Shown here one piece after another: positions 5,131-60,100 of a DNA stretch of 64,000 nucleotides (its first letter is position 1; each line of letters starts with the position of its first letter). The position numbers and the translations under genes are program-made. The DNA is from Macrostomum lignano (taxonomy: Eukaryota), in NCBI GenBank assembly GCA_002269645.1, contig NIVC01003274.1, positions 62,001-126,000 on the forward strand, given 5' to 3'. The notes below the pieces were generated by a model. The model searched no databases. It worked only from the letters and a program-made list of their open reading frames with translations, and was not told the origin of the DNA.

Positions 5131-5170
<40 letters not shown>

Positions 5171-5215
5171 CCCACTCACTCAAGTCAGTCAGTCAGTCAG
5201 TCAGTCAGTCAGTCA

Positions 5216-5255
<40 letters not shown>

Positions 5256-19454: not shown

Positions 19455-22400
19455 ATGAAGGATTTTTACAAATTGCTGCAGTTGTTGCTGCTATGCAACA
19501 CGAGATTCACCGCCAGCAACCCAGACTGCTCCTCCACGAGTCAAGCCGGTGAGGCCAGCGAATTTAGCACGTAAAATGCATATCAACTCCAGCTAACACA
19601 GAGATTGAAAGTAAGCACTATCTACTCTTTTCCAGTGACAGTGCAGCTGAGCAGGGCTGACGTTCTGCGCACCTGGCAACCCAGCGATGCGCACTGCCGT
19701 TGGTGGGAGAGTCGACAGTCAGAGACAAACCGATTCCCTGCTGCTGTGCGGTCCGGGCCTCGGTGGCTTGTGATGCAGCTGACGCAGCCGATGATGCTGG
19801 AGGCGGTGAGCGTGCGAGACTGGGGTGAGTGACGCTGACCGACTCATTCTCATGATGCATGATGAGGCAGAGGGAGCCTTGGACCCAAAGTGTGAGACAG
19901 TGTGATGCTAGCATCTAATTAGCACTCTGAGACAGTGTGAGACCAGCTAGTATCTAATTAGCACTCTGAGACAGTGTGAGACCAGCTAGCATCTAATTAG
20001 CACTCTGAGACAGTGTGAGACCAGCTAGCATCTAATTAGCACTCTGAGACAGTGTGAGACCAGCTAGCATCTAATTAGCACTCTGAGACGGTGTGAGACC
20101 AGCTAGCATCTAATCAGCACTCTGAGACAGTGTGAGATCAGCTAGCATCTAATTAGCACTCTGAGACAGTGTGAGACCAGCTAGCATCTAATTAGCACTC
20201 TGAGACAGTGTGAGACCAGCTAGCATCTAATTAGCACTCTGAGACAGTGTGAGACCAGCTAGCATCTAATTAGCATCTAATTAGCACTCTGAGACAGTGT
20301 AAGACCAGCTAGCATCTAATTAGCACTCTGAGACACTATGATACCAGCTAGCATCTAATAAGCACTCTGAGACAGTGTGAGACTAGCTAGCATCTAATTA
20401 GCACTCTGAGACAGTGTGAGACCAGCTAGCATCTAATTAGCACTCTGAGACAGTGTGAGACCAGCTAGCATCTAATTAGCACTCTGAGACAGTGTAAGAC
20501 AAGCTAGCATCTAATTAGCACTCTGAGACAGTGTGAGACCAGCTAGTATCTAATTAGCACTCTGAGACAGTGTGAGACCAGCTAGCATCTAATTAGCACT
20601 CTGAGACAGTGTGAGACCAGCTAGCATGTAATTAGCACTCTGAGACAGTGTGAGACCAGCTAGCATCTAATTAGCACTCTGAGACAGTGTGAGACCAGCT
20701 AGCATCTAATTAGCACTCTGAGACAGTGTGAGACCAGCTAGCATCTAATTAGCACTCTGAGACAGTGTGAGACCAGCTAGCAGCCAAGCACTCGTGTTGC
20801 AGATGGCCAGTGGCACGCAGCAGCTCCGGTCGGCTCGCCTGTGTCAGCGGTCGGAGCCTCGAGCCTCCCGCTGGAGCTGCAGCTGGAGGATCCGTGCCGC
20901 GCCAGCTGGGAGGCCTTCGGCAGCAGCGACCGCTGGAGGCAGATTGGGGTGAACGGAGTAGATCAAGTAAGCTGCTTCATTTGAATTATCTTATCATAAT
21001 AATGAAATTAATAAATCCATCCATTTCACACTTCAGCCCGTAGTTCGTTTCCTTGTGCTAAGTAGCTTGAGAACTGCTGGACTTAGCTGGAGGGCCGTCT
21101 CATTAACAGGTTCCAAAGAGACTTTTAAATTTTATGAAGTTATCACTGAATCATAGCTTATTGTGAATTAAGTGCTTTAGAAGCAGGTGCAATTTTTCTT
21201 GTAGGTCGCTTTCTACCGCTGAGCCTCACAGTAACTGACAACCGTTTTTGCCCTCTGAGAGACCTGTCCGCCTTGCACGATGGAGTTGAAGCCTGCTTCT
21301 CTGTTTCAAGATGTACCAGCGAATCAATTCAATGCTTCTTTAACCTAAGCAATGGCGCAACTCTGGAGCCGAGACTGGTCTGCTCAACTCTTCTTTATAG
21401 CGTGCTATCAATACTTCTTCTTGCACTGACTTGATACAAAATTCGCTTTTTCAGCTACGAAGCCAAAAGCAGCAAGCTGAATTCGAGTTCACAGCCAATT
21501 TCTCGCTGCACGGAGCACTGCTCACCTGTCTTCTGCCTGATCGGCCAGGGATTCGAATCGAGCAGACCATTGGAATCGTTGGTGAGAAAGAAGTGTCTGC
21601 CTGAGTTAAAAAATGTATTTTAAGTCCGCTTTGAAGATTACAAAGCGAAACATGCACTTTTCAGTCACACCAAGTGTTGAACTGTCGTTATCAACCGTGT
21701 GGGTGATTGGTCGCAGAGCCAAGGTGTACTTTTTCTCAAGCCCAGCTTATCCTCCTCAGCAGCACAGGTGCCAAATTATCTCTGGCAGCAGCACCTGGGA
21801 ACTGAATGAGCATTTTAGTAAGGTAAGTAGTATTATATTATTGTTGAAAATGCTGTACCTTGCCCAATCATGTACTTTTCCATGAAATAAACTTCCAGAC
21901 TAGACAGGCTTATATCAGGAACAGCATCAACATGTCGCTAACTGAAGTAAAGTCTGAATTTGTTGTCACAGTCACGTCAGACATGCTGAATGGCACCGTG
22001 AGATGCAGTAGCAGCTATAAAAGTACAAGTCAAGGAGAAGTCATGAAAGATATCGTTATTTCAAGCATCAGCGGTAAGTGCTTGCATTAGAGAATCTCCT
22101 ATACGCCCGATTGGAAGAGCCATAAAATCTCCTCATTTCAGAGCCTTGCACAACTGCCATTCATGTAGACAACATCCAGTACTCGTATCAGGTTGTACAA
22201 GTGACGTCACTGAAGTGCAGCATTTGGAATGTTCAGCACAGCTGCTGGCTTGTCAAGCCCAAAGAAGATGTCCTGGAGCATCTAATTAAGCTTGCTGTAC
22301 GGTTCTTTGATTTTGTAATAATGCTTTTTATTCAGAAGTTACTGCAACAATATCTGATGTCTTCTATTGCAGCAAGACGGCTTCAGCAGCACTCACAGGT

Positions 22401-24705
22401 TGAATATTATGAAACAAGAGCAGAAAAGAGACTGGCTAGTGAGATGCAGCGTTAATCAGTCGGGAGTGACATACCCGGATGTGGAAATTGAGTTAGCAAG
22501 CGATGCTGACAGTGAGTCAAACGATGCATTCAATCACTGTTAATTGTTCCAATGCAAGTTCAAAGGTTTTTTACCACTTAAATCTACACTACACGTTGCT
22601 ACATTTGTACTCGTATTAATACGAGCGTAATGCAAGAGACCTGCGAGCACCCCGACGCTACGTCTTCGGCGACCTTGTCCGCAATCAGCTGCCCGTTCCG
22701 CTCACTCCTGATCACATACGAGCGTACGAGCGCCTCAATACTGCACACAGGCACGCACTCATACGCACGCTCCCACAAGGTGTACTGCGGCCCTGACTTT
22801 CTAAGCGTCAGGCATGTACCTCTCTGGGCCTTAAGGGCTGGTCCTCATGAGCACTGAGCACGTTTGCTCTACTCACCTCCAGAATAAAAACAAATGAGCG
22901 TTTTTAATATTATAAACTGTACTCGTTCGTATTCTGTTGGCTGCCATTAAAGCGACTTTTGATAACAGTCAACCCACAGCCAGCGTGGAGTCGACCCAAA
23001 TTAATTGGTCATTCCACATGTAAGCACTCGAGAGTGCTTACTTAAGCAACTATTCTTAATCGTTAAATTTTCAGGTAGTGTATCTTCATTTGCTTATTAC
23101 CCCTCGTAACTTTGAGGTTGTAACTGTTGCGAGCCTAAGTGTTCGATGTGTAACTACTCTGCCACTTACTAACCCCACTTTCTTCAGCTTTCTACTATCA
23201 GTGTGGACTGAGTTGCATAATTTTGCCGATTTTATCTGCCCTCGGCCTCATCCTGAGCTGCATGATTATTCGAAGAATTCGCCGCGCTAAATCAGCAAAG
23301 CCAAACTCGACTTCAAGTAGAAGTTCGACATTTAGAGGACGACGTACCCTCCTCTCGAGTGCGGCCACCTCGCCGCAGGCACAGGTAGGGTTAGCCACAG
23401 ATTTAGTTTGTACATTAGGGCACGCATGTAAGTGTCAAATACTGGTGTTTTGATGAAGAATAGCTTTAAACTTAAAAGAAAATTCTAGCTACCAGGGGTT
23501 GTTTTGGCTATTCGCTCAAGCACTTTTGCTACTGGCTTTTGCCTGAAACTGAAGCTATTTCTTAGATTAGCCTGGACACAGATTGCCTGGTAAATAGCGC
23601 TGCTTATCTGATCAGATTTCAGGTGTGCACAGAAGCACAGTTCTAATTAGAACTTCCCTCAGCCTGAACGGCAATATTACATAAGTCCATGTGACTAAAA
23701 TTTAGCAGTGAATTTCGGTGCATCTAATACCAGCTTTTCTAGAGCTAGATCCACTTTTGTTTCTTTAAAAGTTTAATTCCCATTCTAAATAGCAATATAG
23801 TAGAGATATTCTGTTGAGTTTGTGAAATGAATTGCGATCGCTTTCAATCAAGCGTGCTATGGCCTGCACGAGTATTCTATGAAGCCGTAGCCCATTGGTC
23901 AATCATGGATGAATAAAACCTTTGGTCTAGTGCGGCGCTCTGATGTGCCAGCGGCCCAGGCTCGATTCCAAGTGCAGTCATTAATTTGGGGCTAAATTGG
24001 AATCTCGGCTTGGCTCTGCTCGTGCAATTAACGCCCCTGATCAGGGCCAACCCCCAAGGCACAGTGAAGTGCACATGTCTAAGATAAAGTTAGGGCCGCT
24101 GTAAACTCCTGTGTGAGTGAGTGCCTGTGCGTATGACTGCGTACGTATCCGCGCGCTTGTGTGCCTGCTCAGGGGAGTCGGGGGAATGGGCAGCAATGCC
24201 TCTCGCCGGTTGTGACAATGTCGCCTAAAGTGCATCATGGGTGCAAACAGCTCCTTGCCTGTAACAAAAAAATGGCCCTTATATTCCGTAGCCCAGAATC
24301 ATGAGCAGGCTGAACTGCTAGATAGACAAGGAAGAAGCTGGCGTGATCAAAGCAATCTGTTAACTTTCTCACCTTTAAGGCCTATTAAAGTATCATGTTA
24401 AAATTCTTCAAAAGAAATGACTCTGAATAACAGAAATCAATTGTTTCCACCCCCAGCGAGCGGCACCACAGCTCACTCATCATCAGGTTGATTCCTCGGC
24501 GTCAGTGAGCACAGGTGGTCCACCACCTGCAGAAAGCAGCAGCCGCGGCAATGAAAACAAGTCAATTAGCAGTCAAGAGACCGACCCAGTGTACGAAGAA
24601 GTATCTTTGTGTGTCTACAGGCCGGTGCACCCGCTGCCACGGTACTCACGGCAGTTCTCAGAAAAAAATTGTCGACGCGCCCACGACTCCAGTCGGTTTG
24701 ATTGA
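19455..24705 (+). CDS. Family-1 receptor C1: signal peptide, discoidin-like domain, 3 Ig-like domains, TM, Tyr-motif tail; apparently intact
   Basis: Exons 19455-19548 (MKDFYKLLQLLLLC), 19636-19824, 20803-20966, 21037-21109, 21205-21377, 21455-21581 (FTANFSLHGALLTC), 21665-21822, 21899-22073, 22142-22296 (CSIWNVQHSC), 22373-22511, 23188-23384 (TM CIILPILSALGLILSCMII-RRIRR), 24457-24705 (DPVYEEV). Phases join without stops; two donors (21110, 21378) are weak. Confidence 0.8.
19888..20782. repeat. 39-bp intronic minisatellite (AGCACTCTGAGACAGTGTGAGACCAGCTAGCATCTAATT)n, ~23 units
   Basis: Period 39; intron 2 of C1. Confidence 0.97.
22640..22880 (-). mobile_element. Diverged partial SINE related to family 1 (paralog at ~60400-60650)
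   Basis: Similarity to the SINE body (GCGGCCCTGACTTT...GGCATGTAC). Confidence 0.45.
23881..24270 (+). mobile_element. tRNA-derived SINE family 1 (intronic in C1)
   Basis: GCCGTAGCCCATTGG head interrupted by a short insertion, then GGCTCGATTCC B-box; body matches the 50100-50467 copy. Confidence 0.75.
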
Positions 24706-26080: not shown

Positions 26081-26873
26081 TTATTTATTACGCAGTTATA
26101 TGTAGTATTCACTGCTATCTGAAGACTTAGCAACTGAATAACTTTTTTCAAGTTTTTGCAAAATCTATTGTACATTCAATTGTATCGTCTAAAACTTTCG
26201 CTGTACTGTAAATAAAAAAATCGTAAAATGGTAAGTTGTACTTGCTTTAGGATTAGATAATTTAGACTCATACCTCGTTTCTGCGGAATCTGAATTTAAA
26301 ATTATAGAGAAGTTGATTTCAGTAGTCCCGAAGGAACATGCACGATCGTCTTTGCAACTATAGAATCATCCTGACGCATCTGAAACTTGTAATTTTAGCT
26401 TCAATATTGCAAACTAGACAGCGCAACGGCGACTATAATCAAATTCATAACTACAAAAAAGCGTACAACCAGAAATTCAGTTTGGGTTGTTCCTGCCTCG
26501 ATGCTGCTTTCGAATTAAAGGTTACATAATGATCTGGCTGTCACAAACAGTAAGCATCTGTGACGGCAAGAAACACTGAACTTCGCTAGCTGCAGGTAAA
26601 TTTAAGGCGTGATAAATTTCTGCCATCCAACAATATTATCAGCTGAAAGCATAATCCAAGCCAAGTTGCTCAACAAGAAACGAAAAAGAATACCAGATGG
26701 ATCACAATCTTGTATGCATTCTGGTGCTGTTACTGAGCTCAAGAATTGCATGCAATGCTCTGCTCTGCACTGATGCAAGTCACGAGAAGGGTCAGCTGAG
26801 TTACTTACTGCCTTTTGAGCCTTTCATTCATGCCTCAGAAAATTTAGCGAATCCTTTGCGATAAATGTTTTAG

Positions 26874-28466
26874 TGACAGTGCAGCTGAGCAGGGCTGACG
26901 TTCTGCGCACCTGGCAACCCAGCGGTGCGCACTGCCGTTGGTGGGAGAGTCGGCAGTGCTGGAGGCGGTGAGCTTGCGAGACCGGGGTGAGTGACGCTGA
27001 CCGACTCATTCTCATGATGCATGATGAGGCAGAGGGAGTTTGAGACACAAAGTGTGAGACAGTGTGAGACCAGCTAGCATCTACGAGCGTAATTAGCACT
27101 CTGAGACAGTGTGAGACCAGCTAGCAGCCAAGCACTCGTGTTGCAGATGGCCAGTGGCGCCAAACACTCGTGTTGCAGATGGCCAGTGGCTCGCAGCAGC
27201 TCCGGTCGGCTCGCCCGTGTCAGCGGTCGGAGCCTCGAGCCTCCCGCTGGAGCTGCAGCTGGAGGATCCGTGCCGCGCCAGCTGGGAGGCCTTCGGCAGC
27301 AGCGACCGCTGGAGGCACCTTGGAAGATCTTACAACAAGGTAGCAATGTTTACCTCGAACCCGTTGTGTATCTTTGCGGGATCGAGTATTTTAATAAAAG
27401 CAAGATCGAGGGAAATTTTTGCTTCAGGGTAAGGTCCGGTACATACTGGTCAGGAGCTGGACGAATGTTCCGCTAAGTTGGAGTGCCATGAAACTGTCAG
27501 GTCTTTTATTAAATTATTAAATCATCCTACTTATAATGGATGCGTTAAATTTTGTGACAATCGAGGCGCAAGACTAGTGAGTTATCTTTTTTAGGACCTT
27601 ATGCTCCACTGAACCTCACCGTGATGAACATTATGCAATGTTGGTTTAAAAACGTGGAAGCCATGAAGGCTGGGACCTTTGCCTGCCTCTTAGTTTCGAG
27701 CTGTCTTAACGGCTCGCTTGGCTGCCTCTTGAAGTATAGCAACGGGTCAACTCATCACCTGAGACAGGTGTGCCAATCTTTTTAAATAGATTTCGAATTG
27801 TCTGGAGCTTTGCTAAATTTTCTTATAAAACTCTCCATCATGGCAGCTGAACAACCAGACGCAGCCTGCAGTGTTCGAACTCAGAGCCACCTCGGCAATG
27901 CACGATGCGACGCTCAGCTGCTTTCTGACAGACTGACCTGCTGAGCGCATTGAGCAGACTATTGGCATTATTCGTGAGAGCGTTTTAATGAGAATGTTTC
28001 TGTTTCAGTTGACCCTGCCAGTCTGTCAGTATCGGTGTCACCCGTGTGGGTCAGCGGCAGCAGCGTTACTGTGAATGTCACATCAGCTCCGGTTTACCCA
28101 GCACTGCATCACAGCTGCAGCATCATTTCTGCCAGCTCTGAGTGGCGTCTGGATGAAAACCGCACAGATGTGAGATGAACTCATGACTTCTCTTTCTGCA
28201 GGACATCCTGTGAGATCAACTGTGCCTGACAATTCTTATCTTTACTGTTACTCATTGTTGACGTTCAAACAACTTCCAGGTAAAAACGGCTGTCGCAAAA
28301 AATGACAAAAATCAGGCACTGGTGGCGGTGGCGTCTCAGTTCAGATTCCAGGTCAGCGCCGAGATGCTGAACGGCACGTTGGAATGCGAGGGCAGATTTA
28401 GAGACCAAGTGAGGGAAACCGTTGCAGTGCAAACCAATGAGCGCTTTTTCATATCAGCAATAAGTG
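26874..28466 (+). pseudogene. Family-1 copy F: truncated pseudogene
   Basis: Exon-2 homolog with a large internal deletion, ~2-unit minisatellite, duplicated acceptor and exon-3 homolog. Ig exon with TGA at 27934-27936 (LSCFLTD*PAERIEQTIGII vs C1 LTCLLPDRPGIRIEQTIGIV). Further exons SVSPVWVSG and FQVSAEMLNGTLEC. No TM or tail exons found. Confidence 0.75.
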
Positions 28467-28670
28467 GTGAGCTTCTTCAGAAAAAAGTTTCCATACTGAA
28501 TGTAGACATAATTGCGTTTTTATTTGCAATTCAGCCGTCTAATTTGGTACCCTTTGATGAACTGCCTGTCTGCAAAAAATTCAAACTCCAAATATTTTCA
28601 AACTGCTATTATCCTTCTAAAACAGAACAGTTGACAGAATTATAGGGTCAATCGTACATTCCAAATGTCC

Positions 28671-28830: not shown

Positions 28831-29443
28831 TTGGGCGTATCTCTATCTGATCCGGCGCAACTGCAGAAGTTACCAACATTTGTAAACAGTAGACAGATTC
28901 TAGGAAAATCAGTGGTCTGCTATAATTAATTATAATCTTGCAATTCTTACATGAATTTTGTCCATCAAAGCAGCCTTTGACTAACTGTGAGGCTAGCAAA
29001 GGCAAGCGTGTCAGAGGTCGCTTTTAAAAGCTAATAAAAGCCATGGATTATTGAATACGCTCGTGCAACGAGAAATTATGATCACTGTGACGTTACACCC
29101 ATCCGCCCAAAAAGCTTCTGAACAATCGCTTGAAAAACCATAGTTTACATGCAAATTCAAGTTTTAGTCACATTTCTGCTTGTAGGACTTGATTTTTGGC
29201 TGTTTTAGATTTTAGTAGTTTTGTAAGAACTTGGAGCCCTAACGCACTTGAAAACCTGCAACCTGCAATCTACCGTAAATACCGAGAAACAACTTTTTTT
29301 AGCATATCGGACTGGCCGAAAGTGCCACAGCGATTCTAATCAGATTTATAACTTGAACCGGAATGTGATGTCTCTCACCAAAGCGTACAACCAGAAACTC
29401 ACCGGCTGGGTCCTTCCTGCGTCGATGCTTCTTCCGAAAGAAA

Positions 29444-30377: not shown

Positions 30378-33300
30378 ATGAAAATTTCGCTTTGGCAGTT
30401 GCTGCCTCTGCTGCTGAGCATGCGAGTTGCTGCATCTTTGGACTGCTCCGCTGTGAATCGCACGGGTGAGTCAGCTGCTTTTAGCGGCAGCTCAAAGTCT
30501 GGCAAGGCAAAGCTGCAAATCCTTTGCGCTAAATGTTCCAGTGTCAGTGCAGCTGAGCAGGGCTGACGTTCTGCGCACCTGGCAACCCAGCGGTGCGCAC
30601 TGCCGTTGGTGGGAGAGTCGGCAGTCAGAGACAAACCGATTCCCTGCTGCTGTGCGGTCCGGGCCTCGGTGGCTTGTGATGCAGCTGAGGCAGCCGATGA
30701 TGCTGGAGGCGGTGAGCGTTCGAGACTGGGGTGAGTGACGCTGACCGACTCATTCTCATGATGCATGATGAGGCAGAGGGAGCCTTGGACCCAAAGTGTG
30801 AGACAGTGTGAGACCAGCTAGCATCTAATTAGCACTCTGAGACAGTGTGAGACCAGCTAGCATCTAATTAGCACTCTGAGACAGTGTGAGACCAGCTAGC
30901 ATCTAATTAGCACTCTGAGACAGTGTGAGACCAGCTAGCATCTAATCAGCACTCTGAGACAGTGTGAGACCAGCTAGCATCTAATTAGCACTCTGAGACA
31001 GTGTGAGATCAGCTAGCATCTAATTAGCACTCTGAGACAGTGTGAGACCAGCTAGCATCTAATTAGCACTCTGAGACAGTGTGAGACCAGCTAGCATCTA
31101 ATTAGCACTCTGAGACAGTGTGAGACCAGCTAGCATCTAATTAGCATCTAATTAGCACTCTGAGACAGTGTGAGACCAGCTAGCATCTAATTAGCACTCT
31201 GAGACAGTGTGAGACCAGCTAGCATCTAATTAGCACTCTGAGACAGTGTGAGACCAGCTAGCATCTAATTAGCACTCTGAGACAGTGTGAGACCAGCTAG
31301 CATCTAATTAGCACTCTGAGACAGTGTGAGACCAGCTAGCATCTAATTATCACTCTGAGAGAGTGTGAGACCAGCTAGCATCTAATTAGCACTCTGAGAC
31401 AGAGTGAGACCAGCTAACATCTAATTAGCACTCTGAGACAGTGTGAGACCAGCTAGCATCTAATTAGCACTCTGAGACAGTGTGAGACCAGCTAGCATCT
31501 AATTAGCACTCTGAGACAGTGTGAGACCAGCTAGCATCTAATTAGCACTCTGAGACAGTGTGAGACCAGCTAGCATCTAATTAGCACTCTGAGACAGTGT
31601 GAGACCAGCTAGCATCTAATTAGCACTCTGAGACAGTGTGAGACCAGCTAGCATCTAATTAGCACTCTGAGACAGTGTGAGACCAGCTAGCAGCCAAGCA
31701 CTCGTGTTGCAGATGGCCAGTGGCTCGCAGCAGCTCCGGTCGGCTCGCCCGTGTCAGCGGTCGGAGCCTCGAGCCTCCCGCTGGAGCTGCAGCTGGAGGA
31801 TCCGTGCGGCGCCAGCTGGGAGGCCTTCGGCAGCAGCGACCGCTGGAGGCCGATCGGACGTGGCGAAGCGGTGAGACAGATGCAGCAAATGTTTGGTTTT
31901 CTTTCCACCTCAAGCCAATCACGTTTCACTCCAGGCTTTGACAACGTTTATCCGGCTACTCAGCGAGAGTTCGCTTGCTTGGCAGGCCATAAATATCTCA
32001 GGAAGGTTGCTCATTTCTCTTTACTAATTTCATTCAGTCTTTTATGTATCGGTGATAAATATTTCCAGGCCGCTATGCCGTAATGCGCATCAACATGAGC
32101 CTGTCCAGTCACCTGCTTTTCCATCGGCTCGGCCTCTTCGTCAGCGAAGACGCTCAACGTTCGACTTCCTTGTTCTTCCTAGACAGCTGAAGCTTCGACA
32201 AGGCCGCCTGCTGGCTTTCCGATTCTTCTGGAAGAATTGTCAGCGCCCCGCTGGTGAGCTTCCATGCTTTCAAGCATGCATTCGATTGTGCATTCAGTAG
32301 GCTAAGAAATTTCTCAACTGTCTTCAGGTTGGCTCATCTTCAGCTGATGCCAATGGGATTCGGACTCACAAGTTCGAGATTAAAACTCTCCCTAATTACC
32401 ACGGCAAGCTTCTGCAGTGCGGCTTGAGCACTTCTCATGGCGCTATTCTGCTTGAGAAGCTGCTGTTGTGGGAAGGTGCTCTTCTTTTGCTTTTCTAAAC
32501 TTACGAGCAGTTAGAATTGCGGATCGTAGCTGGCATTGCTACTGAAGTTTAGGGACAGACTCAGATGTACCCTTGACAGCCTAGTTATCTTAACGCCATG
32601 GTAAATATAATTATTTTTAGTTCCAGTCAAAGTTCTGCACGTCTCACCAGTCCTGGTTGCTGGGCAGCTGGCAAAGCTCAGCGTGTTCTCAGACTCCCTG
32701 CCTGAGGCTCAGCACCGCTGCTCCATCGAGAGGCCGGGGTCGCAGCGAAGAAGACACCTCACTGTTCTCAGCACTGTAACGTCCTGTCGAATTCAAATGC
32801 ATTGCGTACGCATTTCCAGGAAATGAACTTTGATTATTGATTTTCAATTTCAGAGCCAGTCAAAAACAATCGACAGCACGAACAGAATACTCGTCAGAGT
32901 GCGCTCAGGGTTCAGTTTTAATGTATCGATGGCTGATAGAAATGCCGACATCGTGTGCAAAGGAACTGCTGGATCAGAAGGGAAGGACATTGTTGGGTCT
33001 CGAAGTATTTCAGAAATCAGTGGTATGCACATCCGAACTCTTTGGGGAAAACATGATAATAAATCAAAAAATAAAAATAACTTTTTCAGTCTATGCTTCT
33101 ATGCTAAATCAGTCTATGCTTCATCTTTCAGAGCCCTGCGAGACAGCCGTGGACTTGGGACCGGAGAAATTCTGGCTGGCGGGGCAGACCAAGCTGGTTC
33201 AGGTGATCTCTAAGCGCTGCAGCATCTGGAATGTGATCCACAGCTGCTGGCTGAAACTGAATGGTGACGCTGCAGTCAACACGCCGCTTCAGAAAGTGCA

Positions 33301-34875
33301 AGTGAGTGAAAATCACCTTGGGAAAATTTTCAATCAACAAACTTCATTCAAGTCTAGAATATTTCAGCTGTCTTCACCTCTGCACCAATTGTGATTACAG
33401 CAGGGTGAGTTCAACAGTACTCACGAGCTTCGGGTAGTCGAGGCGATGACCCGTCAGAATTGGCAGGTTTTGTGCAGCGTCAGTCAGTCTGGAGTTGAGC
33501 ACACTGACTCAGAGAGCAGTCTGAGCAGTGCACCAGCTGTTTTTAGTGAGTCCTTTTAGCCGATTCGAGTCTGATTATAAAATTTGATGTTGCGACTCAA
33601 TTGAATTGAAAGAAAATCAAAAGTCGAATCTTTCTTGCCATTGAAAAAACCTCAAGGCGAAGCCAGCAAGTCAACGCTTGAACTCGCGTTAGCCTACGTC
33701 GGTAACAGTCAGTCTGAAGTGAGCGTGCATGCAGTTGATCAAAATGAAAACCAAAACGCACTACTTCCGGTCTACAGCATCAACTGCTCAGTTGCGGGGG
33801 ATGAGGCGTCGACAGAGCTGAGCAGCAGCAATAGCAGTAGCACTGAGTGGCGTGCCTTACTGAAACTGAGATGGAACCGCTCATCTGTGAACGTCTGCTG
33901 CTCCAGTTACCAAACTTATGCCGGATTGACTGTCTTTCGGTCTCTGCAGTGCAAATCTTTAACCCAACAGCCCATTGGTAAAGACGGTGAGCAGATGTTT
34001 GTGGTTAGTGATTCACAGTCATCGTCATTAACCGATGAGCAGCATTTGATCGGCTTCTATTAAGAGAATGCCCTAGCTCTGTTGGTAGTCAGCCTTTGGT
34101 GATTTTCTAAGAAACGGAGTGTCCTGTCCCTCTGCCATAGTCGTCTTTGACAGAAGCAGGAAGTTCTCAACTGGAAATACGAGCGTAATTGAAATATGGG
34201 TAGCTAAGATATGTTCTTAACATGACCTAATAGTAGCGCATAATGCTTCCCTGAAAATTGCAGCTCAGTGGGACGATCGCTCGGCAAGGTTTTTCTCGCT
34301 TCTATTGGCTTCTATACTGGCTTCACTAGTTGTGGGCTTCCTTCTGTCTGCAATATACCACAAATCTGGTATGCTTTTTACCTGCGAAAGAAATCCTGTG
34401 AGTCATATTTAAGTCATTTCAAAATTCAATTTAAAATCTGCCAGAAAGTGTTTCACGTCATTATTTCGTACCATTTATGGTGCTGTGTTCATGCATACTC
34501 CATAGATCAAAGTTCATCATGCATATTTTCTTAATGCTTCGACTATGAAATTGCGATTTTTAATTCATCCTTGATACATGGAATGAATCCTGTAAGCTTG
34601 CAAAATTTCAGCCACAGAGAGGTCACACTGGACTTCGAAGTCAGCACAATGCAGGTCAGGCCGTCCCAATGCGAATGCGGAACAACTTCGCAGTGCAAAG
34701 TGACTCACACGGCAGTAGTGAATACGACTACCCAACCACTGAGCAGCCAGGAAGCTGCAAAAATGAACAGTTGGGTAAAGAAGGTGCCTACACACAGGTG
34801 CTGCTGGTTCCTTTACAACAGGGACCACTGAATGAAGGTCGGGTTTACGTCAACCAGACTGAAAATGCTACTTGA
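30378..34875 (+). CDS. Family-1 receptor D: signal peptide, discoidin-like domain, Ig-like domains, TM, Tyr-motif tail; intactness uncertain
   Basis: Exons 30378-30465 (MKISLWQLLPLLLSMRVAAS), 30542-30730, 31713-31870, unresolved exons ~32070-32500, 32621-32775, 32854-33022, 33132-33301 (CSIWNVIHSC), 33401-33545, ~33650-33975, TM 34264-34368 (FFSLLLASILASLVVGFLLSAIY) and tail to 34875 (SEYDYP, AYTQV, VYVN). Phases at exon 3/4 and TM/tail could not be reconciled by eye. Confidence 0.65.
30797..31692. repeat. 39-bp intronic minisatellite, ~23 units (intron 2 of D)
   Basis: Same unit as in C1 and C2. Confidence 0.97.
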
Positions 34876-37477: not shown

Positions 37478-37512
37478 GTGAGTGAGCATCGTCTTAGATT
37501 GCAATGTAGGTT

Positions 37513-39039: not shown

Positions 39040-42000
39040 ATGAAAAGTACGCTTTGGCAGTTGCTGCCTATGCTGCTGAGCATGCGAGTTGCTGCATCAC
39101 TGGACTGCTCCGCTGTAAATCGCACGGGTGAGTCAGCTGCTGTTAGGGGCAGCTCAAAGACCAGCAATGCAAGGCTGCAAATACTTTGCGATAAATTTTT
39201 CAGTCACAGTGCAGCTGAGCAGGGCTGACGTTCTGCGCACCTGGCAACCCAGCGGTGCGCACTGCCGTTGGTGGGAGAGTCTGCAGTCAGAGACAAACCG
39301 TTTCCCTGCTGCTGTGCGGTCCGGGCCTCGGTGGCTTGTGATGCAGCTGAGGCAGCCGATGATGCTGGAGGTGGTGAGCGTTCGAGACTGGGGTGAGTGA
39401 CGCTGACCGACTCATTCTCATGATGCATGATGAGGCAGAGGTAGTCTGGGACTCAAAGTGTGAGACAGTGTGAGACCAGCCAATAACTAGCACTCTGAGA
39501 CAGTGTGAGGACCAGATACTGTAGCATTCAAGCACTCTGAGACAGTATGAGGACCAGCTACTGTAGCATTCAAGCACTCTGAGACAGTATGAGGACCAGA
39601 TACTGTAGCATTCAAGCACTCTGAGACAGTATGAGGACCAGATACTGTAGCATTCAAGCACTCTGAGACAGTATGAGGACCAGATACTGTAGCATTCAAG
39701 CACTCTGAGACAGTATGAGGACCAGATACTGTAGCATTCAAGCACTCTGAGACAGTATGAGGACCAGCTACTGTAGCATTCAAGCACTCTGAGACAGTAT
39801 GAGGACCAGCTACTGTAGCATTCAAGCACTCTGAGACAGTGTGAGAGCAGCTACTGTAGTCTTCAAGCACTCTGAGACAGTGTGAGACCAGCTACTGTAG
39901 CCTTAAAGCACTCTGAGACAGTGTGAGACCAGCTACTGTAGCCTTAAAGCACTCTGAGACAGTGTGAGACCAGCTACTGTAGCATTCAAGCACTCTGAGA
40001 CAGTGTGAGACCAGCTACTGTAGCATTCAAGCACTCTGAGACAGTGTGAGACCAGCTACTGTAGCATTCAAGCACTCTGAGACAGTGTGAGACCAGCTAC
40101 TGTAGCATTCAAGCACTCTGAGACAGTGTGAGACCAGCTACTGTAGCATTCAAGCACTCTGAGACAGTGTGAGACCAGCTACTGTAGCATTCAAGCACTC
40201 TGAGACAGTGTGAGACCAGCTACTGTAGCATTCAAGCACTCGTATTGCAGGTTTCTTGTGGCACCCAGCACCTCCAGGGGTCGGAGTCGGAGTCTCGAGC
40301 CTCCCGCTGGAGCTGCAGCTCGAGGATCCGTGCAGCGCCAGCGGGGATGCCTTCTGCATCGATCGCTTGCGGAGTCATGATGGCTCCAGTGGCACCGCCG
40401 TGGTGAGTGAAAGAGAAAATTTGCTGTTTGTACGAGCGCATGCTGCACACTGTCTTCCACATTGTGAAGAACTCTGACATTCTGAGCACCCCTCTCACTA
40501 GCAGCCAGCGGCCTTCTTTCTGTTTAGCGGCTACATGTGCCGGCAGCCTCTCCAATGGAACGGTCTCCTTCTGCATGGTGAGGTCTTTCAATTTAGTGCT
40601 TTGATTCGCGGGTTATTGAGTTCGTTTTGCAGCGCCGCGAAACCGCTGTTCGCTGCTCAGTGCAGTGAAACGGCTGATGGCGCTTCATTCGCAGTAAAAA
40701 ATATTCGTCCCACCGCACCCTCAGGCCGCACGGCCCCAATGCAGCTGAAGGAGACCAGAAACTCATTTTGCCTGAACTGCGAGCCCCTCACATGGAGACC
40801 CGGAGATCGCATTGGCTTCTCAGTGAGCAGCTGCGGCTCCCAGACTCCAGGCTGCTCAGTTCGACTCGCGGATGGCAGCAGGCGGGAGGCTCAGTTGGTG
40901 AGCGACTGGCCGGTCTTGCCTGACAGATTTTCCACTTTGAGTCTGAGATCTCAGGGCATTCTGTGAATTTTAGCTGATCTCAAGACCGGGCGCTGGTCGG
41001 ATTCGAGTCACCCATTTTGAGTACTTTGTGGAGGAGAGCGACATTCCGCGGACTCTGACCTGCTGGCAGGGGGACCCAGCGGCTCTGCAGATTGAGAGGA
41101 AAATCGCTGTAGCATGCAAGTCTTGGGCAGCCAATTCTGGTATCCAAGGCTTCGTATAGTTTTGCACCTGCTTAAACCTCTTGATTTTACTTTTATTTCA
41201 GCTTCCGATGGAAGCTGTACTCTATCGGTCTCTCCGGTGTGGGTCTCAGGCAGGAAGATTTTCTTAGAAGCCGAAGCGCAGCGATTCTTTCCGGAGCCCA
41301 GGATTCAGTGTTCGATCAGGGCGGTGACGGAGCAGCCTTTGAAAGTTGAGAGTCAGGTGAGGACAGGTGCACTGTCTTTGAGTGGGCAAATTTGGGTGAG
41401 CAGGACCGCTAACAGATCACAAATTGGGGTTGAAAATCTGACCTCCACGTGATCCACCCAATTTTCCAGTCACTTGCCAACCCAAACACTTTGCGCGCGA
41501 CCTACATGTATCCTCACACAGACACTTAAACTTTGGGTGCCACTTAGTTTACATGTATATCTTGTATATTCTTCAACTTTCAGAGCCGGTCTGTAGTGAA
41601 GGACAATGAAAACAGGGTTCTGCTGTCAGTTCGCTCAAGGTTCAGCTTTCACGCCTCGCTCTCGATGGTTGGAGGCCGAATTCTGTGCTGGGTGAATCTG
41701 ACTGGAGGCGAAAATCGTGTTAGAAGTACTGTGAAGATAAAATTAAATCACAATATAACGTTGATAAGCGGTGAGAAATTCTAAAAATAATTAGATTTAC
41801 ATATTTTATAGATATGAGCCACCCAGCCACCCCTCACCTAGCCACCCCTCACCCAGCCACCCCTCACCCAGCCGCCCCTCACCCAGCCACCCCTCACCCA
41901 GCCACCCCTCACCCAGCAACCCCTCACCCAGCCACCCCTCACCCAGCCACCCCTCACCCAGCCACCCTCACCCAGCCACCCCTCACCCAGCCACCCCTCA

Positions 42001-43551
42001 CCCAGCCACTCACTCGCACTGCAGAGCCGTGCCAGACGGCTGTTGATCTGGGCTCGAGTCCGCACTGGGAGGTGGGCCAGACCCGCCACATCGCAGTGAC
42101 CTCCAGCGCCTGCAGCATCTGGAATGTGAGCCACAGCTGCCGGCTGCTGCAGGCTGATGGCGCTTCACCCGTGCCGCTCCGCAGAGTTGAAGTACGCTTG
42201 CACTGAGACTGGCCAAAGTGCTCAGAGAAGTGCAGAGCCTCACCTGTCCCCATCTGCACCCTCATTCGCATTGCAGCAGAGCAGCTTCAGCAGCGCTCAC
42301 CAGCTGCAGGTGAGCAGGTCGATGGCTCACCAGAACTGGTCGGTTCGCTGCAGCGTCAACCAGTCAGGTGTGGTGTATGATAAGGCTGAGAGTCTGGAGC
42401 AGCTGCGACCGCCGATTTTCTGTGAGTGCCGAACAGTGAATGAAGCGAGTCAGCTGTGAACGCTTTGCTTGAATGCGATTTCCAATTTCACTGCAGACCC
42501 GGCAAGCATTCAGGTAAATGGCAGCATTGAGAGCTCGCGACTGCACCTGGCTGTGGCTGCCTCCGACGCTCGGCCTCCGGTGACATCCGTGAAATGCTTA
42601 ATTTCGAGTTCTATTGTGAGCAGTAGCTTTGATATTTGTTGTTGGTTTTTCTGCTTGAAATTATTCGCAAAAATTCGAACAATTTATTTTCTTCCTGTCT
42701 CCAGCAAGTGACTCTGCACAAGCAAAGCGATGCCAACACGTGGAGTTTTGATAGCGATGGAGGTCCAATGAATGTTTTTTACAGAAGGCAGCACCTCGCT
42801 GCATCGAACATCACTATCTACTGCACTGCCCATCAGGGGTCAACGAATGGCAACCTGATATTTCAGAGCCACAGCTCGAAACAAATTTACGTAGCTGAAT
42901 CGATTGGCACTACGGATCTGCCAAGCACTCAATCAGTGAAGGCTGTTGAGTCAAAGGGTATGGGGCTTGAGTCGCACTCACTGTTCTAACATGTTTATTG
43001 AGAACATCGGAGCTAATCAACCTTCAAGAAACACACTAGCTGGTAAAATTATTGCTGCAGGTCCATTCTCAACCGTGTACGCCTTTCCACTGTCGCACCT
43101 GCTCGTTGCGTCCGCTTCGGTGATAGCCGTAATTGTGATGGTTGGCATTGCCTCAGCTGGGATTGCCTGGGTAAATAATACCTTTTCTGGATAGGTACAG
43201 TGGTAGCTATCACTGTCAGTCAGTCAGTCAGTCAGTCAGTCAGTCAGTCAGTCAGTCAGTCAGTCAGTCAGTCAGTCAGTCAGTCAGTCAGTCAGTCAGC
43301 TGTTACCCTTGCAGAGAGTGTCCCGGTCCAGATTAGTCGCACTGGCTGCTCAGCGCAGAGGCGGCGGTGCTCTTCAGATGCAGCCGCTGGCAGCCGCGAC
43401 CTCCGCGGGCGCCGGCAGCAGCGCGTACGACTACCCGTCCACGAATGCGACAGTTCAGGGCAGCAGGAGCCACAGCGAGGCCGGAGAGTCCAACAACATA
43501 CCCAGTGTCTACCTGGTGCTCACTCCGTCGAGGAGGTCTCAGCAGCAGTAG
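39040..43551 (+). CDS. Family-1 receptor E: signal peptide, discoidin-like domain, 4 Ig-like domains, TM, tail with YDYP and ITIM-consensus SVYLVL; apparently intact, ~730 aa
   Basis: 14 exons: 39040-39127, 39204-39392, 40251-40402, 40502-40577, 40725-40897, 40974-41115 (GC donor), 41202-41356, 41584-41770, 42025-42191, 42277-42421, 42497-42615, 42705-42957, 43061-43170 (TM LLVASASVIAVIVMVGIASAGIAW), 43315-43551. Phases join without stops. Confidence 0.82.
39460..40240. repeat. 41-bp variant of the intron-2 minisatellite (AGCACTCTGAGACAGTRTGAGACCAGCTACTGTAGCATTCA), ~19 units
   Basis: Period 41; the first ~29 nt are shared with the 39-bp unit. Confidence 0.95.
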
Positions 43552-52509: not shown

Positions 52510-56414
<3,905 letters not shown>

Positions 56415-57127
56415 ACTATTTCTATTGTCAATCGCATTCAAGTACCGCCTCTGCATAGGTAATTCTGCAAACTTAGTTTTTTTGATTTAGATAAAACTCA
56501 AAAACTCTAAGTACTTCAGATTAATAATGATGCCTAGTAAAAGGCTGAAATGATTTGTGTTTTATTAACGTATTGATTTTCAGTTTAGTGCTAATCATAT
56601 TTACTATCGATATTATTCATGTATATAAATTGAGTATAAGCCAGTCGGTGTTTATCATTATTTTTTAACTAAACACACAAATTGATCAATTCATTTTTAC
56701 AGTGTAAACGGGTTCAATTTTTTTATTAGCATGAGACATTTTAAAACACTGAGAGGAGCTATTTACTACCTACCAGGCAGATGCTTGGCTTGAAGTAAAT
56801 CCTGATTTCTGCGTCAGCTGCTTTGGCTATTACAGAATACAGAGTCACAGAGTAATAAATAAGCCAAACTGACTAAATTCAAATGTAAGGATTCAAAACA
56901 TTCACATAAATGCTTAAAATAGCCTTAGTAAAAACAGTCCATTTTTCAGGGACATTAACTGTAGCAGCAGTTCAAGGCAATCGTCGGAGAGGCGGCATAT
57001 TGATGTAAACAAAGCAGGCAGTCATAAAATCTTCAAGTCCAAGCTGCATCCATCGCACACTGCGTAAAACTTTTAAGTAAAAATCGACATTAGCGAAAGC
57101 TTTCTTTAGCTAAATATTAGATTTTCA

Positions 57128-60100
57128 ATGAAGGATTTTTACAAATTGCTGCAGTTGTTGCTGCTATGCAACACGAGATTCACCGCCAGCAACCCAGACT
57201 GCTCCTCCACGAGTCAAGCCGGTGAGGCCAGCGAATTTAGCACGTAAAATGCATATCAACTCCAGCTAACACAGAGATTGAAAGTAAGCACTATCTACTC
57301 TTTTCCAGTGACAGTGCAGCTGAGCAGGGCTGACGTTCTGCGCACCTGGCAACCCAGCGGTGCGCACTGCCGTTGGTGGGAGAGTCGACAGTCAGAGACA
57401 AACCGATTCCCTGCTGCTGTGCGGTCCGGGCCTCGGTGGCTTGTGATGCAGCTGACGCAGCCGATGATGCTGGAGGCGGTGAGCGTGCGAGACTGGGGTG
57501 AGTGACGCTGACCGACTCATTCTCATGATGCATGATGAGGCAGAGGGAGCCTTGGACCCAAAGTGTGAGACAGTGTGATGCTAGCATCTAATTAGCACTC
57601 TGAGACAGTGTGAGACCAGCTAGTATCTAATTAGCACTCTGAGACAGTGTGAGACCAGCTAGCATCTAATTAGCACTCTGAGACAGTGTGAGACCAGCTA
57701 GCATCTAATTAGCACTCTGAGACAGTGTGAGACCAGCTAGCATCTAATTAGCACTCTGAGACGGTGTGAGACCAGCTAGCATCTAATCAGCACTCTGAGA
57801 CAGTGTGAGACCAGCTAGCATCTAATTAGCACTCTGAGACAGTGTGAGACCAGCTAGCATCTAATTAGCACTCTGAGACAGTGTGAGACCAGCTAGCATC
57901 TAATTAGCATCTAATTAGCACTCTGAGACAGTGTGAGACCAGCTAGCATCTAATTAGCATCTAATTAGCACTCTGAGACAGTGTAAGACCAGCTAGCATC
58001 TAATTAGCACTCTGAGACACTATGATACCAGCTAGCATCTAATAAGCACTCTGAGACAGTGTGAGACCAGCTAGCATCTAATTAGCACTCTGAGACAGTG
58101 TGAGACCAGCTAGCATCTAATTAGCACTCTGAGACAGTGTGAGACCAGCTAGCATCTAATTAGCACTCTGAGACAGTGTAAGACAAGCTAGCATCTAATT
58201 AGCACTCTGAGACAGTGTGAGACCAGCTAGTATCTAATTAGCACTCTGAGACAGTGTGAGACCAGCTAGCATCTAATTAGCACTCTGAGACAGTGTGAGA
58301 CCAGCTAGCATCTAATTAGCACTCTGAGACAGTGTGAGACCAGCTAGCATGTAATTAGCACTCTGAGACAGTGTGAGACCAGCTAGCATCTAATTAGCAC
58401 TCTGAGACAGTGTGAGACCAGCTAGCATCTAATTAGCACTCTGAGACAGTGTGAGACCAGCTAGCATCTAATTAGCACTCTGAGACAGTGTGAGACCAGC
58501 TAGCATCTAATTAGCACTCTGAGACAGTGTGAGACCAGCTAGCAGCCAAGCACTCGTGTTGCAGATGGCCAGTGGCACGCAGCAGCTCCAGTCGGCTCGC
58601 CTGTGTCAGCGGTCGGAGCCTCGAGCCTCCCGCTGGAGCTGCAGCTGGAGGATCCGTGCCGCGCCAGCTGGGAGGCCTTCGGCAGCAGCGACCGCTGGAG
58701 GCAGATTGGGGTGAACGGAGTAGATCAAGTAAGCTGCTTCATTTGAATTATCTTATCATAATAATGAAATTAATAAATCCATCCATTTCACACTTCAGCC
58801 CGTAGTTCGTTTCCTTGTGCTAAGTAGCTTGAGAACTGCTGGACTTAGCTGGAGGGCCGTCTCATTAACAGGTTCCAAAGAGACTTTTAAATTTTATGAA
58901 GTTATCACTGAATCATAGCTTATTGTGAATTAAGTGCTTTAGAAGCAGGTGCAATTTTTCTTGTAGGTCGCTTTCTACCGCTGAGCCTCACAGTAACTGA
59001 CAACCGTTTTTGCCCTCTGAGAGACCTGTCCGCCTTGCACGATGGAGTTGAAGCCTGCTTCTCTGTTTCAAGATGTACCAGCGAATCAATTCAATGCTTC
59101 TTTAACCTAAGCAATGGCGCAACTCTGGAGCCGAGACTGGTCTGCTCAACTCTTCTTTATAGCGTGCTATCAATACTTCTTCTTGCACTGACTTGATACA
59201 AAATTCGCTTTTTCAGCTACGAAGCCAAAAGCAGCAAGCTGAATTCGAGTTCACAGCCAATTTCTCGCTGCACGGAGCACTGCTCACCTGTCTTCTGCCT
59301 GATCGGCCAGGGATTCGAATCGAGCAGACCATTGGAATCGTTGGTGAGAAAGAAGTGTCTGCCTGAGTTAAAAAATGTATTTTAAGTCCGCTTTGAAGAT
59401 TACAAAGCGAAACATGCACTTTTCAGTCACACCAAGTGTTGAACTGTCGTTATCAACCGTGTGGGTGATTGGTCGCAGAGCCAAGGTGCACTTTTTCTCA
59501 AGCCCAGCTTATCCTCCTCAGCAGCACAGGTGCCAAATTATCTCTGGCAGCAGCACCTGGGAACTGAATGAGCATTTTAGTAAGGTAAGTAGTATTATAT
59601 TATTGTTGAAAATGCTGTACCTTGCCCAATCATGTACTTTTCCATGAAATAAACTTCCAGACTAGACAGGCTTATATCAGGAACAGCATCAACATGTCGC
59701 TAACTGAAGTAAAGTCTGAATTTGTTGTCACAGTCACGTCAGACATGCTGAATGGCACCGTGAGATGCAGTAGCAGCTATAAAAGTACAAGTCAAGGAGA
59801 AGTCATGAAAGATATCGTTATTTCAAGCATCAGCGGTAAGTGCTTGCATTAGAGAATCTCCTATACGCCCGATTGGAAGAGCCATAAAATCTCCTCATTT
59901 CAGAGCCTTGCACAACTGCCATTCATGTAGACAACATCCAGTACTCGTATCAGGTTGTACAAGTGACGTCACTGAAGTGCAGCATTTGGAATGTTCAGCA
60001 CAGCTGCTGGCTTGTCAAGCCCAAAGAAGATGTCCTGGAGCATCTAATTAAGCTTGCTGTACGGTTCTTTGATTTTGTAATAATGCTTTTTATTCAGAAG

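Follow-up and report, generated by a model that had tools for sequence, protein, structure and literature searches.

A near-identical exon-minisatellite cassette in otherwise divergent paralogs of Macrostomum lignano, probably maintained by ectopic recombination

How do tandem paralogs that are mostly no more alike than shuffled sequence come to share two exons, and the minisatellite-bearing intron between them, almost without change? The question is raised by a 64-kb stretch of Macrostomum lignano DNA (the window), which contains six genes of one family, all on the same strand (E0, C1, F, D, E, C2). The window is best explained as a portion of a tandem cluster encoding a Macrostomum-specific family of single-pass membrane proteins; all family members with a source shown or looked up are from M. 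lignano, and no relatives of this receptor family were detected outside that species. In the predicted layout a signal-peptide exon comes first, then an N-terminal region and what are probably Ig-like repeats, and a transmembrane segment leads into a tail with tyrosine motifs. Pfam gave nothing above cut-off for the family proteins, the best match being C2-set_2 in P0005 (E = 0.0024, 18 bits, cut-off 21 bits). The AF2 model of P0007 is confident for residues 170-265 only and its PDB matches are Ig-like sandwiches with E-values of 1e-3 or weaker, and many family members are labelled 'Ig-like domain-containing' in UniProt. The genes of the window and one highly similar tract are as follows.

1..5810, forward strand: E0, 3' part of an E-type gene, truncated by the window edge (tblastn of P0021, 64-97% identity)
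18290..22400, partner 55963-60163, forward strand: C1/C2 tract of 4.1 kb, ~99.7% identical (sliding-window alignment)
19455..24705, forward strand: gene C1, 12 exons, intact 630-aa ORF (hand-built model; P0001 match 93-100%)
26697..28466, forward strand: F, truncated pseudogene of P0005/P0007 type
30378..34875, forward strand: gene D, a mosaic with a body of P0015/P0019 type
39040..43551, forward strand: gene E, intact 613-aa ORF, P0021 type
57128..62491, forward strand: gene C2, intact 630-aa ORF

In the C1 model all introns are GT-AG and the frame is open; by inspection the protein has a signal-peptide-like N-terminus, a single hydrophobic segment and a cytoplasmic tail. Identity between C2 and C1 is 99-100% over exons 1-10 and falls to 97.5% in exon 11 and to 91.6% in exon 12, and the 99.7% tract is nested in an older duplication of ~40 kb (1-25200 versus 40831-63000 by self-blast, 75-96% identical). 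E0 is a duplicate of E (self-blast, 1-6240 matching 40831-44054), with a recent tract from exon 9 to exon 10, intron included, at 96-99% identity; its cassette falls outside the window. Gene D has an in-frame TGA at 32188-32190.

The cassette, ~0.5-2 kb altogether, runs from exon 2 through intron 2, where the 39-bp minisatellite lies, into the first 115-145 nt of exon 3.

19636..20947, forward strand: C1 cassette (exon 2 19636-19824; intron 2 19825-20802; exon 3 20803-20966, homogenised to ~20947)
19907-20782, forward strand: C1 array, 39-bp units, ~22 copies
26874-27339, forward strand: F cassette remnant (exon 2 26874-26986; array collapsed to ~1.5 units)
30536..31857, forward strand: D cassette (exon 2 30542-30730; exon 3 31713-31870, homogenised to ~31857)
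30799-31692, forward strand: D array, 39-bp units, ~22.6 copies
39204..40402, forward strand: E cassette (exon 2 39204-39392; exon 3 40251-40402)
39489-40241, forward strand: E array, 18 copies, 8 of 42 bp and 10 of 41 bp
57309..58709, forward strand: C2 cassette (exon 2 57309-57497; exon 3 58565-58728)
57580-58544, forward strand: C2 array, 39-bp units, ~24 copies

Exon 2 is 189 nt long in C1, C2, D and E. The preliminary description of this DNA had put the differences between C1 and E at about 8, and exactly 8 are present, with 5 between C1 and D and 1 between C1 and C2. It had also called exon 2 near-identical in D, C2 and F, which is correct for D and C2 and fails for F, where a 76-nt deletion causes a frameshift with a TGA at 26969; further lesions in F are a 32-bp duplication at the exon 3 acceptor (27127-27190) and a second TGA (27926-27928). 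C, D and E match one another at 96-97% of exon 2 positions, whereas exons and introns 4-10 among C, D, E and F are 45-62% identical, to be read against a shuffled-sequence baseline of 50.8 +/- 1.9 (maximum 58), and introns of strongly unequal length fall below that range. Only D-E exons 9/10 (68-69%) and C1-F exon 6 (66%) exceed the shuffled level. That C and E cannot be aligned outside the cassette is borne out by exons at the shuffled level and by the lack of any blastn match between them there. Intron 2 begins with 57 nt that are invariant in 5/5 window copies, and its non-repeat flank is conserved to the same degree as the exons.

One and the same pattern is found in 14 cassettes over three contigs. 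Homeolog is used here for a collinear copy, and the three contigs may be homeologs, further tandem repeats or haplotypes. Over 57 non-homeologous pairs, median identities are 54% upstream, 95% in exon 2 plus flank, 97% in the exon 3 core and 53% downstream, with ranges of 92-99% for the cassette and 48-63% for the flanks. At the protein level, median identity over the family is 94% in exon 2, 89% in the exon 3 core and 31% in the remainder. The suggestion that this reverses a hypervariable-tip pattern is half right: exons 2-3 (~110 mature residues) are invariant, but the adjoining exons 4-5 are as variable as the rest.

Full constraint on the exon 2-3 peptide would make exchange of DNA unnecessary, and the peptide is nearly invariant across about 30 predicted proteins, with dN/dS below 1 and cassette edges that match the limits of the conserved coding block. 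Yet exon 2 has a dS of 0.045-0.094 (dN 0.014-0.021) where the rest of the gene has a saturated pS of 0.67-0.79, its synonymous sites being 10 to 20 times less diverged than those elsewhere. The homogenisation had thus rightly been placed at the DNA level; selection alone had been expected to leave synonymous divergence in exon 2 as high as in the Ig exons, and it is far lower. Protein-level selection as the only force is ruled out by low synonymous divergence in exon 2 together with conservation of intron 2 outside the repeat. The array is conserved as well, the pseudogenised F, L_E and L_F retain near-consensus remnants, and the relationships of the cassettes conflict with those of their flanks. 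Moreover, the divergent member P0035 has only ~35% identity in the cassette region (by eye), and the protein region that the cassette encodes can therefore change. We regard protein constraint by itself as highly improbable. Selection on the protein alone was rejected as contradicted by the synonymous, intron-flank and flank-discordance evidence. Purifying selection does act on the cassette too, as its dN/dS of ~0.2-0.5 shows.

Alternatively, a non-coding function (regulatory element, structured RNA or splicing control) might fix the DNA itself, and the least variable 30 nt of the cassette (0.5%) do lie in the intron 2 flank, at alignment columns 271-300 (the GC-CGACTCATTCTCATGATGCATGATGAGGC region). 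However, an Rfam search of 19400-21100 gave no match even at E-values up to 1, and array length and unit type vary freely. For E and its homeolog L_E, exon 2 plus flank and the upstream 250 nt both show 95% identity, and in this pair the cassette is therefore no better conserved than the flank. Haplotypes common across gene types need exchange in any case, and we consider constraint on the nucleotides unlikely.

The homeolog pairs C/L_C, E/L_E, F/L_F and L_g/M_3 are evident in the flanks, which are only 78-95% identical, and within the cassette they are no closer than other pairs. W_C1/C2, W_D and L_g have a 98-99% identical 5' half, including the flank haplotype, joined to three different gene bodies, and L_C and M_3, the homeologs of that haplotype group, have other haplotypes. 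On the 5' side L_g matches W_C/W_D at 99% identity, against 90-96% in exon 3; the two cassette halves have different histories. A His/Leu variant in exon 3 occurs in both states within the C clade and likewise within the D clade. In the four-gamete test 124/378 informative-site pairs are incompatible (Rm at least 5), part of which recurrent mutation could account for, and the PHI test was not significant on the cassette core (p = 0.28) and gave p = 0.023 with the boundary zone included.

Gene D had been described as a mosaic with an E-type exon 1, and we concur. Its 5' module (~30365-30541, exon 1 and intron 1) resembles that of E, being 93% identical in exon 1 and 86% in intron 1 as against ~58% to C for both, and is followed by a cassette of the common type (30536-31857, 95.7% identical to C1 19630-20947); the diagnostic sites of exons 2 and 3 place D with E, F and L_C, not with C. 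The array and exon 3 of D had been assigned to a C type, which is in fact the type common to the family: a 39-bp array with the common exon 3 is found in 12/14 cassettes, the exceptions being E and its homeolog. It is E that is the outlier, with an exon 3 that is 68-73% identical to other copies and has lost conserved Trp residues, and with an array of 41/42-bp units (78-82% identical). More mosaics, also joined at cassette edges, are found on the two other contigs. L_b is a mosaic of four parts, M_1 joins an L_a upstream to an L_b cassette and M_2 joins an L_a downstream to an L_b-type upstream. The cassette is where 5' and 3' modules reassort (in D, L_b and L_a/M_1/M_2), and the switch points that can be mapped (L_b, D) lie at cassette edges, none inside the array.

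We infer that repeated ectopic homologous recombination between paralogs keeps the cassette near-identical (probability about 0.78), given the observed homogenisation at the DNA level, cassette/flank discordance, module reassortment and fast array turnover. Exchanges would take place among paralogs on one contig and on two collinear contigs, mostly as interlocus gene conversion and now and then as a longer conversion or an unequal crossover. They would be limited to the cassette because it is the sole long near-identical stretch that the paralogs have in common, and edges would remain sharp where the conserved coding sequence, and with it the homology, ends. Exchanges resolved at an edge would reassort 5' modules (promoter and exon 1) with 3' modules (the variable ectodomain), giving mosaics such as D. 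GC and GC3 are highest in exons 2-3 (64-73% and 73-81%), as GC-biased conversion would give, against 42-55% and 42-56% in the other exons of C1, with a GC3 of 74% in exon 1. Several D and E exons also have high GC3. This is concerted evolution restricted to one region of an uncharacterised family; the process is known and the family is new.

Mosaics and identity could also have been created in the assembly, by mis-joins at arrays or by polishing with cross-mapped reads. M. lignano has a repeat-rich, partly duplicated genome, our analysis is based on assembled contigs rather than reads, and many UniProt gene models break at the array (starting GQW... or ending ...VRDW), all of which favour such an artefact. 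Against it, each copy is distinguished by private substitutions and by an array length and unit map of its own, the arrays (0.2-1.7 kb) are short relative to long reads, and the pattern is repeated on three contigs and in UniProt (A0A1I8...) protein models. One of these models, P0024, reproduces the join of D exon 3 to the D body, with E after D. Its Cys at the TGA of the window (32188-32190) means that the exact window sequence was not the source of the prediction. An assembly artefact therefore seems to us very unlikely. We give still less credence, and almost none, to a mobile cassette, spread by a transposon or exon shuffling into unrelated genes. The sharp 5' edge, at the exon 2 acceptor in most copies, would suit such an origin, but 14/14 copies occupy the same position and orientation in homologous genes whose neighbouring exons are homologous at the protein level, every copy found in 192 kb belongs to a family gene or a fragment of one, and no terminal repeats were noticed by eye.

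If recombination between paralogs is the cause, the role of the array has still to be considered: it may start exchange, supply homology or be a passenger. Array turnover is fast. The 39-42-bp units number from 1.5 to ~42; C1 has 22 and C2 24 despite 99.7% identical flanks, and C2 has 24 where its homeolog L_C has ~5. Rare variant units had been said to recur in similar order in C1, D and C2. This is confirmed by the unit map for an AATCA unit and a 50-bp unit with a duplicated GCATCTAATTA, which are in the same order in all three, the duplication being 11 bp and not 10; a GAGATCAG unit is present in C1 and D and absent from C2.

That the minisatellite is a hotspot, with breaks in or beside it starting tracts that spread into exons 2 and 3, had been proposed earlier. 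The array lies near the centre of the homogenised tract (~270 nt 5', 140-170 nt 3'), turnover is fast, the cassette halves differ in history, and some human minisatellites adjoin conversion hotspots; variant units common to C1 and D are confined to the 5' half of the array, the sole hint of polarity. The flanks give no such hint, as the diversity profile of 13 copies is a step function, ~60% outside and 0.5-5% inside with no gradient toward the array, and the most variable stretch of the cassette (15%) is the 30 nt adjoining the array on the 5' side. Furthermore, E exon 2 is still homogenised though its array and exon 3 have diverged, F and L_E have near-consensus flanks with almost no array, and the mapped switch points are at the cassette edges. 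The array may simply ride inside the tract, because the edges sit where conserved coding sequence ends, and we find an initiating role possible, yet doubtful. A bolder and improbable idea is that the cassette is a dedicated recombination module, with two invariant coding blocks and the array as landing pad. Were this so, variable ectodomain bodies would be moved often, perhaps somatically, between promoters and signal-peptide modules, generating diversity in flatworm recognition receptors in the manner of the VSG 70-bp repeats or of gene-conversion systems in other animals.

Several known systems resemble the flatworm cluster in part. Vertebrate clustered protocadherins are likewise tandem same-strand cell-surface receptors whose variable exons are under region-restricted conversion, with one part homogenised and raised in GC3 while other parts of the ectodomain diversify. 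In the flatworm, by contrast, the homogenised part is N-terminal and consists of two exons and a minisatellite-bearing intron, the cassette is also the junction for module swaps, and no relatives of the family are detectable beyond M. lignano. The 70-bp repeats of trypanosome VSG genes, which are recombination anchors, also form an imperfect tandem repeat before each variable gene body, mark the upstream limit of copied segments and vary widely in number. Unlike these, the flatworm repeat is intronic and lies between two conserved coding blocks, no homogenised 3' anchor is present across gene types (downstream exons 52-69%, exons 9-10 58-69%), and there is no evidence for an expression site or programmed switching. 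Sea urchin Sp185/333 (SpTransformer) genes are similarly lineage-restricted, clustered and mosaic, and are bordered by simple repeats proposed to promote recombination; theirs are intergenic microsatellites, with mosaic elements inside one exon, whereas the flatworm has a 39-bp intronic minisatellite inside a homogenised two-exon block. The human hypervariable minisatellites MS32 and CEB1, which are flanked by conversion hotspots, share with the flatworm arrays units of tens of bp, interspersed variants, fast length change and variant sharing limited to one array end, as between C1 and D. Their exchanges are allelic, at a single locus and measured in sperm, whereas those in the flatworm would be between paralogs and leave flanks without a polarity gradient. 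Finally, KIR/LILR and MHC clusters likewise hold Ig-type receptors, in which unequal crossover and conversion produce hybrid genes and patchy identity; introns and most exons remain alignable in these clusters, whereas flatworm identity outside the cassette is at the random level.

Six members of one gene family lie in the window, all on the plus strand; their models were built by hand, with GT-AG boundaries at all introns.

E0: 1 to about 5810, plus strand, cut by the window edge
C1: 19455-24705, plus strand, intact, 630 aa
F: 26697-28466, plus strand, truncated pseudogene
D: 30378-34875, plus strand, one in-frame TGA
E: 39040-43551, plus strand, intact, 613 aa
C2: 57128-62491, plus strand, intact, 630 aa
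Cytoplasmic tails: 24457-24705, 34612-34875 and 43315-43551, differing by gene type, with tyrosine motifs in all (by eye)

All 22 protein matches to the first C1 translation are from Macrostomum lignano, as is every member looked up among the 35 recovered when a profile was searched against 1.84 billion representative proteins, indicating a lineage-restricted and uncharacterised family. Literature searches returned no paper on the family, nor on minisatellites or gene conversion in M. lignano. On inspection, exon 1 looks like a signal peptide, there is a single hydrophobic segment, and the tail carries tyrosine motifs, which suggest signalling receptors. Motifs recognised by eye in the tails include DPVYEEV in C1/C2, RVYVNQ and AYTQVL in D, and the ITIM-like SVYLVL in E. 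Pfam had no match above cut-off for the N-terminal 302 aa of C1 or for five family proteins. An AF2 model of one family protein (P0007), made from a 16-sequence paralog alignment, was partly confident (pLDDT 56.6), and no fold is assignable to exons 2-3 because the cassette-encoded part falls below 50. Searched against PDB folds, this model returned weak Ig-like or Ig-sandwich matches and nothing else; the label 'Ig-like' may tentatively be applied to the family.

One block, here termed the cassette, is nearly constant among these genes and comprises exon 2, intron 2 with its minisatellite array, and the first part of exon 3. As stated in the preliminary description, exon 2 is 189 nt long and C1 differs from E at 8 positions; the corresponding counts are 5 for D and 1 for C2. 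A comparison of each segment in turn puts exon 2 at 96-97% identity among C, D and E; among C, D and F, exon 3 reaches 90-91% over its whole length and 96-98% in its core. The Ig exons of C and E had been called unalignable at the DNA level, and indeed the remaining exons and introns of these genes reach only 45-62% identity, where shuffled sequence gives 50.8 +/- 1.9; exceptions are exon 1 (93%), intron 1 (86%) and exons 9/10 (68-69%) between D and E, and exon 6 (66%) between C1 and F. Protein comparison across the family gives a median pairwise identity of 94% in exon 2 and 89% in the exon 3 core, but 31% over the remaining ectodomain. On the 5' side the boundary is abrupt: between gene types there is no alignment upstream of the exon 2 acceptor, D, E and F having a further ~25 nt upstream in common. 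All five window copies agree throughout the first 57 nt of intron 2, and the 3' boundary falls within exon 3, directly past ...DRWR, where clade-specific tails begin. The suggestion that this is the reverse of a hypervariable tip is partly upheld, as ~110 residues are invariant, but variable exons follow directly 3' of exon 3; in C1, two short ones (21037-21109 and 21205-21377) separate it from the first Ig-like exon. What survives of the cassette in F is near-consensus, but its exon 2, which had been called near-identical, carries a frameshifting 76-nt deletion and its array has collapsed. In F the last full exon 2 codon has also changed from Trp to Arg, a TGA lies at 27926-27928, the exon 3 acceptor is duplicated over 32 bp (27127-27190), and there are no exons past 28466.

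Intron 2 arrays consist of 39-bp units in C1, D and C2 and of 41/42-bp units in E. Unit maps bear out the sharing of rare units, in conserved order, by C1, D and C2, with the duplicated motif measuring 11 bp rather than the 10 bp first reported:

C1: b a a a c d a a e f g h a a i b a j a a a
C2: b a a a c a a e e f g a a a i b a a j a a a a
D: a a c' a d a a e, followed chiefly by consensus units

The array is non-coding, its unit having stops in all six frames (by eye), and Rfam gave no match to 19400-21100 at E-values up to 1.

Fourteen cassettes were compared, drawn from the window and two contigs fetched from NCBI: L001 (NIVC01001776.1:336021-433236; six cassettes, prefixed L_), which is collinear with the window at 77-96% identity, and L002 (NIVC01003341.1; three cassettes, prefixed M_). 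Homeologs, the matching copies on collinear contigs, are obvious from their flanks:

C and L_C: upstream 78%, downstream 93%
E and L_E: upstream 95%
F and L_F: upstream 81%, downstream 79%
L_g and M_3: upstream 90%, downstream 94%

Cassette identity is 92-99% for all pairs, homeologous or otherwise, excepting the deleted F and the divergent exon 3 of E. The 57 non-homeologous pairs have median identities of 54% upstream and 53% downstream, compared with 95% in exon 2 with its flank and 97% in the exon 3 core, confirming homogenised exons in divergent paralogs as a family-wide feature. One 5' haplotype, flank variants included, is common at 98-99% to the window genes C1/C2 and D and to L_g, which have three different gene bodies, but the homeologs L_C and M_3 carry other haplotypes; exchange therefore went on after the contigs diverged.

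Had protein-level selection alone kept the exons alike, exon 2 would be expected to be as diverged at synonymous sites as the Ig exons. Instead, exon 2 has a dS of 0.045-0.094 and a dN of 0.014-0.021 (C2, D and E), while the remaining coding sequence is saturated (pS 0.67-0.79), and this result together with the homogenised intron rules out such selection as the sole cause. A mobile cassette is ruled out by the position of the copies, 14/14 of which occupy the same place in homologous genes. Four-gamete incompatibility was found for 124 of 378 pairs of 28 informative sites (Rm at least 5); the PHI test was not significant for the cassette core (p = 0.28) and gave p = 0.023 when the boundary zone was included. 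GC and GC3 peak in exons 2-3 of C1, a faint hint of biased conversion, though several D and E exons are also high in GC3. Overall, gene conversion with mosaicism is well supported.

D was rightly recognised as a mosaic, in which an E-type 5' module (from ~13 nt before the ATG) precedes the common cassette and D's own body. Its array and exon 3, previously called C-type, are really of the family-common type, the odd ones being those of E and its homeolog L_E. Mosaic genes outside the window are located as follows:

L001 19000-25700 (L_b)
L002 780-3100
L002 9900-13500

L_b is a four-part mosaic of an upstream region with 99.3% identity to that of L_g, an exon 1 region of its own, a stretch from the array end to 22704 with 95.6% identity to L_a, and an E0-type body. 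On L002, M_1 joins an L_a upstream region (97-98%) to the L_b cassette (98% over 1710 nt, both with a 1400-nt intron), and M_2 combines an L_b-type upstream (83%) with an L_a-type downstream region (96%). In D, L_b, M_1 and M_2, 5' and 3' modules have thus reassorted at the cassette. Further recent tracts are present in the cluster. C1 and C2 are ~99.7% identical over 4.1 kb from promoter to exon 10, introns included (18290-22400 vs 55963-60163), beyond which identity is 97% and then 92-95% downstream, and 84-96% upstream. The pattern suggests either a large conversion of recent date or a duplication nested within the window's older ~40-kb repeat (1-25200 vs 40831-63000, 75-96% identity). A candidate second conversion tract covers exon 9, intron 9 and exon 10 of E0 and E (1734-2330 vs 41955-42554) at 96-99%; upstream of it, identity is about 90-94% in exons and 69-80% in introns.

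The preliminary description cast the minisatellite as the hotspot of this exchange. Arrays clearly change fast, ranging from 1.5 to about 42 units and being unlike in C1 and C2 despite 99.7% identical flanks. Conversion and mosaicism stand, but the array as initiator is unproven: a polarity gradient toward it was absent from the diversity profile of 13 copies, which is a step function (about 60% outside the cassette, 0.5-5% inside), and mappable mosaic switch points are at the cassette edges. Within the cassette, diversity is highest (15%) in the 30 nt adjoining the array on its 5' side, and in E a homogenised exon 2 sits beside a diverged array and exon 3. On the simplest reading, homology would be kept by the two conserved coding blocks and the intron between them carried along as a passenger, its array possibly adding length of perfect homology. 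Many other minisatellites occur in the window (967-1788, 2537-3089, 9353-12551, 14244-16195, 29442-29849 and 41820-42009), among them 15-bp units in intron 8 of both E0 and E, 26 copies of a 21-bp unit, 139 of a 23-bp unit, 70 of a 28-bp unit and 4 of a 102-bp unit. Such arrays being common in the genome, the one in intron 2 is in itself not unusual.

The in-frame TGA of D (32188-32190, exon 5) replaces a Cys of the paralogs, and since a UniProt model that fuses D and E and is otherwise identical (P0024) has Cys at this position, the stop may be an allele or an erroneous base, and not a lesion fixed in a pseudogene. The long form of D exon 4 (31935-32005) is out of frame, and an internal GT donor (31968/31969) restores the frame at the cost of the conserved ...W.A.N.SG strand; public models of the relatives P0015 and P0019 use this donor. 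In E, exon 3 (40251-40402) has lost conserved Trp residues (ASWEAF to ASGDAF, DRWR to DRLR), and in L_E a deletion (L001 about 38440-38560) fuses the array to mid-exon 3. The E lineage seems to be decaying at exon 3, with exon 2 still consensus-like. Several of the UniProt models P0002, P0010, P0012 and P0033 read part of exon 2 off-frame (e.g. ...SQRQTDSLLLCGPGLG...), and many family models begin at exon 3 or stop at exon 2. Annotation is broken at the cassette, either by indels or by the array splitting the models, a practical warning that many public gene models of this family are broken or fused at the array. An interspersed ~350-bp repeat, probably a short mobile element, is present in both orientations, in intron 11 of C1 and C2, in intergenic sequence, and on L001 and L002:

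7461-7690
23923-24271, minus strand
50088-50440
61698-62057, minus strand

Transgenesis and RNAi are available in this laboratory animal, and the genes form a small natural test bed for asking whether ectopic exchange is started by an intronic minisatellite or simply carries it along. They also raise the question of why the first ~110 residues stay the same in about 30 otherwise hyperdivergent receptors, for which a shared partner, a processing step or an assembly interface are possible explanations. Partial concerted evolution is well known, and the present case adds a new, region-restricted variation on it in a new receptor family confined to flatworms. It is unusually clean, identity rising from the random level to 95-99% and falling again over a few bases. 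The family is without known relatives outside one flatworm, and its homogenised block doubles as the junction at which modules are reshuffled.
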